Origin: Salpingoeca rosetta
Taxonomy: Eukaryota; Protista; Choanoflagellata
Reading direction: 5' to 3'
DNA: 64,000 nt
NCBI GenBank assembly: GCA_033442325.1
Contig: JAWQFM010000004.1
Location: 1,170,693 to 1,234,692 of the forward strand
The notes under the pieces were generated by a model. It saw only the letters and a list, made by a program, of their open reading frames with translations. It was not told the origin of the DNA and did not search any database. Of the stretch, positions 33,964 to 45,289 are shown piece after piece. Position numbers and translations under genes: made by a program. The stretch's first letter is position 1. Each line of letters opens with the position of its first letter.

Positions 33964-39285
<5,322 letters not shown>

Positions 39286-39587
39286 GATGTCAAACTTCCA
39301 GCAGACCAGCAAGCAGACCAGCAAGCAAGCAAGTAAGGCAAGCCACTGCCTTCTTCTCTTCCTCCCCTTCAGCCTTTTTGTTTGTGTTTGTGACTGATTT
39401 CAGTGTGTGCAGGCAAAACCATAAGCAGCTCTGACACATCAACATCAACAACAAGCAAGCATTTGGCCCACACACCCTTTCACTCGCTGACACACACAAC
39501 CTCCTCATTTCCTCCTCCACCCATCCATCCGTCCGTCCGTCCATCCGTCCGTCCGTCCGTCCATCCATCGTTTGTGTCGACAACGCG

Positions 39588-40337
39588 ATGGCGTACCATC
39601 ACCAACAACAGCAAGAGCTCAAGCCATGCGTGGATGCGAGCTGGTTTGTGGAAAGCGTGCCTGAGCGCTTCATGTGCCCCATCTGCCATGACGTGATGGT
39701 GCAGCCAACACAAGGGCCGTGCCAGCACGAGTTTGGCCACCAGTGCATCCGTGCGTGGATCAAAGATCACCCTTGCTGTCCTGTTTGCCGGGACCCGCTG
39801 ACCACCTCCATGCTCACGCCCGCACGGCTCATGCGCGAGCTGGTGGAGGAGCTGCCGCTCCGCTGCAAGTTCCACAACCACGGCTGCCAGGCGCGCATCA
39901 CCTTGGCTTCGGCGGACGCCCACCTGCGAGACCAGTGCACCGTCATCGAGTGCACCATGCCAGAGTGCCCTGAAATCGTGCTGCGCGAGCACCTCGCGGA
40001 CCACCTGAAAGTCTGTCCGCACAACCCGGGGGCGCACGCCGCACGTATGAAGACGCTGGAGCAGCAGCAGCAGAACATGCGGGTGGTGCTGTTTGAGAAC
40101 CTGCGCTCGGGCGTCGTGGATCCGCTCGTATCCGTGCACAAGCGCCTGGTGCAGAGCCAGGTGCGCATCCGTACCTTTGAGCAGACGCTTGACGAGATCT
40201 CCATCCCTCGCGATGACGACGTGGCGCGGTCGAAGCGGAAGGAGCTGCTCCGTGTCCTGGGCCAAACCGAGGCCGCCATCGACACGCTCGCCAAGTCCAT
40301 CAGCTCCTTCAAGGCGCACTGCCCCAGCAACGCTTGA
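39588..40337 (+). CDS. Intronless RING + TRAF/SINA-type Zn finger protein with BAG-like C-terminus (249 aa)
   Basis: CPIC..CQHEFGHQC..W..CPVC RING; CKFHNHGC..H..QC and CTMPEC..H..VC Zn fingers; C-terminal LDEISIPRDDDVARSKRKELL. Confidence 0.85.
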   Translation: MAYHHQQQQELKPCVDASWFVESVPERFMCPICHDVMVQPTQGPCQHEFGHQCIRAWIKDHPCCPVCRDPLTTSMLTPARLMRELVEELPLRCKFHNHGCQARITLASADAHLRDQCTVIECTMPECPEIVLREHLADHLKVCPHNPGAHAARMKTLEQQQQNMRVVLFENLRSGVVDPLVSVHKRLVQSQVRIRTFEQTLDEISIPRDDDVARSKRKELLRVLGQTEAAIDTLAKSISSFKAHCPSNA

Positions 40338-40413
40338 TATCCGGTGTAATGTAACTTGAAGGCCGTACAGAACAGGAGGGTGCAAGAAATCCCTTCCTTT
40401 ATTTGACTCGTAC

Positions 40414-40463
<50 letters not shown>

Positions 40464-40891
40464 ATGCGTGTGTGTGTGTGTGTGCGTGTGTGTGTGCCTG
40501 CGTCTCATGGACACCGCTTGCGTGCGATGTTGTGATGTGATGTGTTTCACTTGCCCTTGTTGTGCTGTTGTTGTGGTGGGAAACGGACGGCTGGCATTGA
40601 AGTGCAGACATATGTTACCGCGGCTGTGTGTGTGTGTGTGTGTGTGTGGTCTGTTATTCTTAATCAACTACATATCTGAATGAACGATTGCCCATATGGC
40701 AGTGCGCACCATGTGCAAAGACAAATAGCATTCGAAGAGGCGAGAGAGGGTGAACGAGAAGGGAGGAGAAAGAAAGACAGCGAAGAGAAGAACGAGAAAT
40801 GGGGGGAGTGTTAAGAAAAGACAACGTGTGTGGATCTGTTCGATGATACCAGCGATAGCTGTGGTGGTGGCCGTGTTGAAGACACAAGCGC

Positions 40892-45289
<4,398 letters not shown>

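Follow-up and report, generated by a model that had tools for sequence, protein, structure and literature searches.

A transcribed single-exon gene beside a spliced neighbour

The window studied here, a stretch of 64,000 nucleotides from the choanoflagellate Salpingoeca rosetta, carries on its forward strand a gene for a small protein composed of a RING domain, two TRAF-type zinc fingers and a helical tail (Table 1). The open reading frame lies where an initial annotation of the letters had placed it, and the C-terminal peptide quoted there is found in its translation. RING-type Pfam scores above threshold, matches to TRAF5 and TRAF6 and the existence of full-length relatives together place the frame beyond chance. 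In three stranded RNA-seq runs, the transcript (39548-40699) is covered by reads on one strand only, at a depth of 5-49 and with zero splice joints. Its ends are approximate because reads were not placed within the repeats at 39511-39578 and 40404-40506.

The upstream neighbour, on the minus strand, has two GT..AG introns in the RNA-seq data (38478/38788 and 38984/39165), and the LisH motif of its first exon scores 27.0 bits, slightly below the cut-off of 27.3. Taken together, the reading frame, the unspliced RNA-seq coverage and the introns of the neighbour indicate that the RING gene is genuine and expressed and that it lacks introns, with spliced genes on either side. The earlier description of an intronless gene among intron-bearing ones was correct in this respect. 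Since transcripts of opposite strand flank the short region between the two divergent reading frames, we presume that this region is a candidate bidirectional promoter.

On the other side, a convergent minus-strand transcript begins near 40700 and abuts the 3' end of the RING gene. At 41006, loose read ends suggest splicing of this transcript into a more distant exon, and the open reading frame at 40660-40887 on the same side has zero Pfam matches. Besides the microsatellite in the 3' UTR, further long (GT)n/(CA)n microsatellites lie near the gene at 38619-38777 and 41174-41273.

Table 1. Features of the RING gene and its surroundings in the window, with the two BAG genes found elsewhere in the genome
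Feature	Position	Strand	Remarks
Divergent neighbour gene	38396-39324	minus	First exon with ARMC9-type LisH motif
Short intergenic region, 263 bp (ORF end to ORF start)	39325..39587		Common to the divergent gene pair; holds the 5' UTR
Unspliced mRNA, approximate extent	about 39548..40699	+	Stranded RNA-seq, three runs
Complete CDS	39588..40337	+	ATG start, 249 aa + stop, intron-free
RING domain, residues 30-67	39675..39788	+	C-x2-C-x11-C-x-H-x2-G-x2-C-x10-C-x2-C
TRAF-type CCHC zinc finger 1 (C93, C100, H112, C117)	39864..39938	+	Aligned with TRAF5/TRAF6 ZnF1
TRAF-type CCHC zinc finger 2 (C122, C127, H139, C143)	39951..40016	+	TRAF5/TRAF6 alignment
Tail helix 1, residues about 147-177	40026..40118	+	Heptad-patterned, invariant Asn171 at core position
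BAG1-like helix 2 - loop (IPxxD) - helix 3, residues 178-236	40119..40295	+	Invariant L201, D202, D210, R217
(GT)n microsatellite	40404..40506	+	In 3' UTR; RNA coverage on both sides
WW+BAG gene, BAG3-like	G000:C1:2496537-2499725		Intron inside BAG domain
IQ+BAG gene PTSG_07063	G000:C12:971932-975147		Related sequences in transcriptome sets of choanoflagellates (EukProt)

A TRAF-like RING and zinc-finger module in the N-terminal half

The claim of a RING followed by TRAF-type zinc fingers was supported by Pfam, by solved structures and by Foldseek. Residues 24-87 score above the respective Pfam cut-offs for U-box (37.6 vs 21.4 bits), zf-C3HC4 (31.5 vs 21), zf-RING_2 (30.0 vs 27.3) and zf-C3HC4_2 (28.5 vs 27), with U-box as the best-scoring model for the domain. 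Residues 86-145 have weak Pfam matches to Sina_ZnF and zf-TRAF, the latter reaching 15 bits at residues 118-145, under its cut-off of 27. The closest solved structures cover the RING and the fingers together: the RING-ZnF module of TRAF5 (7l3l_A, E 1.8e-12, residues 12-142), then that of TRAF6 (5vo0_A, E 2.9e-11) and next LNX2, within an overall range of E 1.8e-12 to 3.9e-8. With the full-length model as query, Foldseek recognised only the TRAF6-like N-terminus (TRAF6, E 2.9e-5).

Seven of the eight cross-brace zinc ligands of the RING are present. Ligand 5, opposite the fifth Cys of TRAF6, is Gly50, and the alignment has Gly at this position in all seven family members that possess the region. 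A C3H-G-C3 'RING-G' pattern with the same spacing has been tabulated as a rarity in plants (PMC5240574). Among the CCHC ligands of the two fingers, six of eight are invariant in the family alignment. C93, C100 and C117 of finger 1 never vary and His112 is lost in one member only (P0006), and in finger 2 Cys143 is displaced in P0006 and P0009. Pfam detects no MATH (TRAF-C) domain, and the chain stops at residue 249 after the helical tail; the protein is thus TRAF-like in its N-terminal half only.

A choanoflagellate family with an old, intron-free architecture

Eight sequence clusters make up the family. Those with a named source all come from choanoflagellates, namely Barroeca monosierra, Choanoeca flexa and Salpingoeca infusionum, and the others were drawn from environmental or Logan assemblies. 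Full-length relatives share 28-49% identity, and orthologues of 236-249 aa align over their entire length. A word search returned two relatives, and an exhaustive HMM search with the tail profile recovered five true members besides the query, the remaining matches being TPR repeat proteins. A word search with the eight-sequence profile added zero members, and a scan of metagenome loci with one family alignment yielded nothing but unrelated RING proteins. The S. rosetta genome (55.4 Mb, 68 contigs) has one copy of the gene.

One family member departs from the common layout. In P0005, a Choanoeca flexa transcript of 201 aa, the second half of the RING is missing, so that CQHPY runs directly into the first TRAF finger; both fingers and the tail are kept. 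An isoform without a RING, a paralogue or an artefact of assembly could each account for this sequence.

The lack of introns had been taken in the initial annotation as a sign of retroposition or recent shuffling. We reject a recent origin by either route, as the orthologues in at least three other named choanoflagellates are equally intron-free. Three additional contigs, of which two or more are clearly genomic, also carry uninterrupted orthologue reading frames, and on two of the three the adjacent genes are split into exon-sized pieces. From this shared intron-free form, in at least three other named choanoflagellates and on the three further contigs, it follows that the RING-ZnF-tail architecture and its lack of introns are old within choanoflagellates.

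Predicted fold of the tail

The C-terminus is helical, as had been noted from the letters: residues 146-249 are predicted to form helices with pLDDT of about 90-93. AlphaFold builds the tail from two of them, 147-203 and 211-243 (57 and about 34 residues), the second folded back, and gives the same hairpin at similar confidence with an alignment of three or of eight sequences. A heptad pattern runs unbroken from residue 154 to 204. By sequence, a stutter together with a Pro-rich junction (residues 178-182) closes the first tail helix, where AlphaFold models helices 1 and 2 as continuous. Seven of the eight members have a Pro-rich stutter at residues 172-182, and it could represent the absent turn between helices 1 and 2.

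These features bring in a reading of the tail that has nothing to do with BAG, namely an antiparallel coiled-coil hairpin that di- or trimerises the RING-ZnF module as in TRAF and TRIM ligases and perhaps binds some other partner. Its likeness to BAG1 would then be chance or a convergent helix-loop-helix motif. The predicted pairing of a 57-residue helix with one of 34 residues folded against it (pLDDT 93) is what such a hairpin should look like, and an invariant Asn171 in the core of heptads 154-204 is typical of register-setting coiled coils. Pure three-dimensional alignment with VIA-align found generic hairpins only (CHMP4B, FadA, Get1 and prefoldin, Z 8-9), with BAG absent from the best 50 matches, and the ESM Atlas structure matches to the deposited model were all coiled-coil hairpins. 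The domain order is also that of the TRAF plan, in which RING and TRAF zinc fingers are followed by a coiled coil. Counter to this, the tail shows no similarity to the TRAF coiled coils, and its profile matches no solved TRAF or TRIM coiled coil in the PDB at E <= 10. Furthermore, conservation in the tail peaks in the signature of helix 2, loop and helix 3 (LD, IPxxD, R..RK), which contains charged residues that never vary, and BAG1 is the one natural protein matched consistently by profile, half-profile, Foldseek and Atlas. We consider the coiled-coil hairpin a serious contender, if one that we would sooner doubt than accept.

The three-helix BAG fold that the initial annotation had in mind fared unevenly. 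The AlphaFold model has two helices and looks generic to VIA-align, whereas a shape search of the ESM Atlas listed the UBL+BAG (BAG1) cluster first (TM 0.67, 76 residues, rmsd 1.6 A). An RNF41-type tail was also considered and dropped: the best value in an ESM-Atlas feature search (zf-TRAF and USP8_interact clusters) was 0.77, under the noise level.

Sequence resemblance of the tail to BAG1

An HMM of the eight tails was compared with all 177,635 PDB sequences, and its four best matches were human and mouse BAG1 (E 1.1e-5 to 1.6e-4). Over 59 residues the two align without a gap, profile positions 36-94 being paired with 1hx1_B 49-107, which are BAG helices 2-3. A non-colinear second segment contributes about 8 bits to the whole-sequence E-value of 1e-5. 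Domain by domain, the E-values for BAG1 fall at 0.001-0.005, or at 0.001-0.013 across the four matches, marginal figures that favour a coiled coil unrelated to BAG and that are comparable to those of unrelated helical proteins (mtRF1 0.005, LINE-1 ORF1p 0.009, a designed TPR 5e-4). When two non-overlapping half-families were searched separately against the PDB, BAG1 came second in both lists, with its register unchanged (E 0.025 and 0.0095). First place went to different, unrelated proteins: LINE-1 ORF1p in one case and a designed TPR-like protein in the other. The sole other BAG protein in the PDB profile searches was BAG5, at noise level with one half-family (E 0.51). Foldseek with the tail-only model placed BAG1 in its first row at a non-significant E of 0.23, and about a third of its best 50 matches were BAG1 together with Arabidopsis BAG1/BAG4 chains.

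The Pfam BAG model, named beforehand as a check on the C-terminus, stayed below its cut-off in every member. Against the 23.4 bits required for PF02179, the best score was 18.5 bits (P0006, full length); the tail of P0006 alone gave E 5.6e-4, in the register of the BAG1 match. Of the eight full tails, one matched. Sub-threshold BAG matches came from two members in all, P0006 and the query, and six of eight were without any BAG match. The full tail of the query had no Pfam BAG match, and a 78-aa fragment of it reached 13.4 bits (E 0.11), again in the BAG1 register. A six-frame Pfam BAG scan of the S. rosetta genome did not list the RING-gene locus.

Other searches for BAG relatives were likewise negative. 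A three-tail HMM run against 1.8 billion sequences returned family members and spurious TPR proteins and no BAG protein, as is to be expected, since 20-29 bits cannot reach significance in a collection of that size. Against the WW-BAG and IQ-BAG loci of the same genome the tail HMM scored 2.6 bits or less, the WW-BAG gene being searched as separate frames with its exons unjoined, and hhalign gave a probability of 0.9% for the tail family against the IQ-BAG family. A calibration helps in reading these values. A four-sequence profile of the IQ-BAG domain, which is Pfam-positive, scores no more than about 20 bits (E 0.003-0.004) when compared with the solved BAG4 and BAG5 and misses BAG1. Scores as low as those of the tail against BAG1 are therefore normal between true BAG subtypes, and the negative result of tail against IQ-BAG is less telling because the IQ-BAG profile itself misses BAG1; with profiles of this depth, BAG subtypes do not detect one another.

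Looking across these searches, the BAG-like character claimed for the tail survives weakly and for the BAG1 type only, through the profile, the half-families and the Atlas; set against it are the Pfam scores below cut-off and the predicted two-helix fold. We regard the BAG reading of the tail as plausible but unproven. The part of residues 146-249 that forms helices 2-3 and their connecting loop is most likely a divergent BAG1-type BAG domain.

A different suggestion arises from the three-tail profile, which picks up proteins with many TPR repeats (E 1e-10 to 1e-4), and from the designed TPR-like proteins among the PDB matches: the loop and last helix might be a degenerate single TPR-like unit. 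These matches, however, span only profile positions of about 62-98, and several of the E-values owe their size to many summed repeats. The Gly needed for the TPR turn is not conserved, and AlphaFold gives one continuous helix of 34 residues here. Pfam TPR_12 matches one of eight tails at E 0.035, and IF140/IFT172-TPR is marginal on two at E 0.023, all far below threshold. We consider a TPR-like unit highly improbable.

Hsp70-contact positions in the tail

We take Glu212, Asp222, Arg237, Lys238 and Gln245 of BAG1 to be the residues that contact Hsc70 in the 1HX1 complex. With tail profile position p corresponding to protein residue p+142, the invariant D202 and R217, two of the six invariant residues of the tail, fall on Asp222 and Arg237, and K/R218 falls on Lys238. 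The equivalent of Glu212 is not kept (V/H/Q/G/A), with an invariant Arg193 adjoining that position, and neither is that of Gln245 (G/K/D/A). Of these five contact positions, the family thus keeps two or three. For the Asp and Arg contacts pointed out in the initial annotation, equivalents of Asp222 and Arg237 are present, but the set is incomplete, with those of Glu212 and Gln245 missing.

The incomplete set could mean that the tail does derive from a BAG1 domain but has lost Hsp70 binding and now serves another partner or acts only as a scaffold. Such a 'mock BAG' would draw on the same BAG1 homology as an Hsp70-docking domain, and would explain the loss of the Glu212 and Gln245 equivalents and the Arg next to the Glu212 position. 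It has a reported precedent in the 'mock' BAG domain of BAG6, which is reported not to bind Hsp70 (Mock et al. 2015, cited in PMC4753570); BAG homology alone is accordingly no proof of Hsp70 binding. Retention of the Asp222 and Arg237/Lys238 equivalents would be unexpected were the Hsp70 face free of selection, and we judge this explanation improbable.

BAG architectures are in any case varied. The 'brand new BAG' of BAG2 is a dimeric four-helix bundle (PMC4753570), and this variety makes the argument from a two-helix fold against BAG less sharp. BAG2 and BAG6 are precedents for BAG-type modules without a monomeric three-helix bundle in the former case and without Hsp70 binding in the latter. 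Sequence similarity of the S. rosetta tail to the BAG2 or BAG6 domain was not detected.

BAG and Hsp70 genes of the genome

The only Pfam-positive BAG genes in the S. rosetta genome are one that combines BAG with WW and one that combines it with an IQ motif (Table 1). We detected no UBL+BAG gene there. This agrees with a published report that BAG-1-like matches in choanoflagellates carry the ubiquitin-like domain only (PMC7766421).

Two cytosolic Hsp70 genes lie 1.5 Mb apart on one contig (G000:C2). Both are intron-free and end in IDEVD, and their products are identical at 628 of 644 residues; intron-free genes are thus not unique to the locus of the RING gene. A BiP gene on another contig (G000:C12) ends in HDEL and has an N-terminal intron. 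Complex prediction for the tail with the nucleotide-binding domain of the S. rosetta cytosolic Hsp70 (L003:2176-3324:-) gave 0.60, compared with 0.54 for a control in which the tail was kept and an unrelated protein took the place of that domain, a difference too small to weigh on either side of the binding question.

Interpretation

The locus is best explained as a transcribed gene, specific to choanoflagellates and with a single exon, that encodes a small soluble ubiquitin ligase. The tail may be a functional Hsp70-docking domain of BAG1 type attached to a RING E3, a reading to which we give a little less than an even chance. By homology, residues 24-145, with the TRAF6/LNX-like RING and the two TRAF-type fingers, would recruit E2~ubiquitin. 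For docking, the tail would use a conserved face formed by Asp202 and Arg217/Lys218 and bind cytosolic Hsp70 at its nucleotide-binding domain, which would place the RING beside Hsp70-bound clients or beside Hsp70 itself. Release of the client and its ubiquitination could in this way be coupled within one chain. Oligomerisation is a further probable role of the first tail helix. More tentatively, and with the balance of our judgement tilted against it, choanoflagellates might possess in this protein a one-chain ligase and Hsp70 nucleotide-exchange factor, with a BAG1-type BAG domain on a TRAF-like RING where animal BAG1 has its ubiquitin-like domain; in this lineage it may replace the missing UBL-BAG form of BAG1.

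The combination relates to known kinds of protein, the RING-TRAF-ZnF ligases and possibly the BAG co-chaperones. BAG1 (UBL plus long BAG; 1HX1, 1I6Z, 5AQF) has in common with the S. rosetta tail the 59-residue ungapped helix 2 - loop - helix 3, the same LD...P......R..RK spacing and a hairpin of similar length and shape. It differs in having a ubiquitin-like domain in front, where the S. rosetta protein has its RING-ZnF module, and the tail differs from BAG1 in the lack of Glu212 and Gln245 equivalents, in a first helix predicted to be continuous with the second and in its sub-threshold Pfam BAG scores. TRAF6, TRAF5 and LNX2 resemble the S. rosetta protein in a RING directly followed by TRAF-type CCHC fingers and then a helical region. 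In contrast to them, it has no MATH/TRAF-C or PDZ domain, and its RING ligand 5 is Gly.

The likeness to CHIP/STUB1 (TPR, coiled coil and U-box) is one of idea: a chaperone-docking module and an E2-recruiting fold of RING/U-box type in one chain. The N-terminal module of the S. rosetta protein even has U-box as its best Pfam match. The TPR domain of CHIP binds the C-terminal EEVD tail of Hsp70 and Hsp90, and CHIP is no nucleotide-exchange factor. Whereas CHIP docks on EEVD through its TPR domain, the S. rosetta tail is proposed to dock on the nucleotide-binding domain through a BAG-like hairpin, and the two docking modules are unrelated in sequence.

In animals, the steps of chaperone-linked degradation fall to different proteins: Hsp70 is connected to the proteasome by BAG1, and ubiquitin is attached by CHIP or other ligases. 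We found no described RING+BAG fusion in the searchable literature. If the Hsp70-docking reading is true, the S. rosetta protein would tie the chaperone directly to ubiquitination, and it would bear on the published puzzle of choanoflagellate BAG-1-like matches with a ubiquitin-like domain alone (PMC7766421). If the tail is merely a coiled coil, the protein is one more lineage-specific TRAF-like RING ligase.

The genome of S. rosetta is editable. The organism is also reported to be transfectable (PMC6333174), and given the small size of the protein the claim is directly testable.

A last observation concerns the profiling of this family. Residues 204-240 (window 40197-40307), with the pattern IPRDD..R..RK.LL..LG..E.A...L..A, mimic the TPR consensus. 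This mimicry pulls in multi-repeat TPR proteins at E 1e-10 in the search of 1.8 billion proteins, and calls for caution when the family is profiled.
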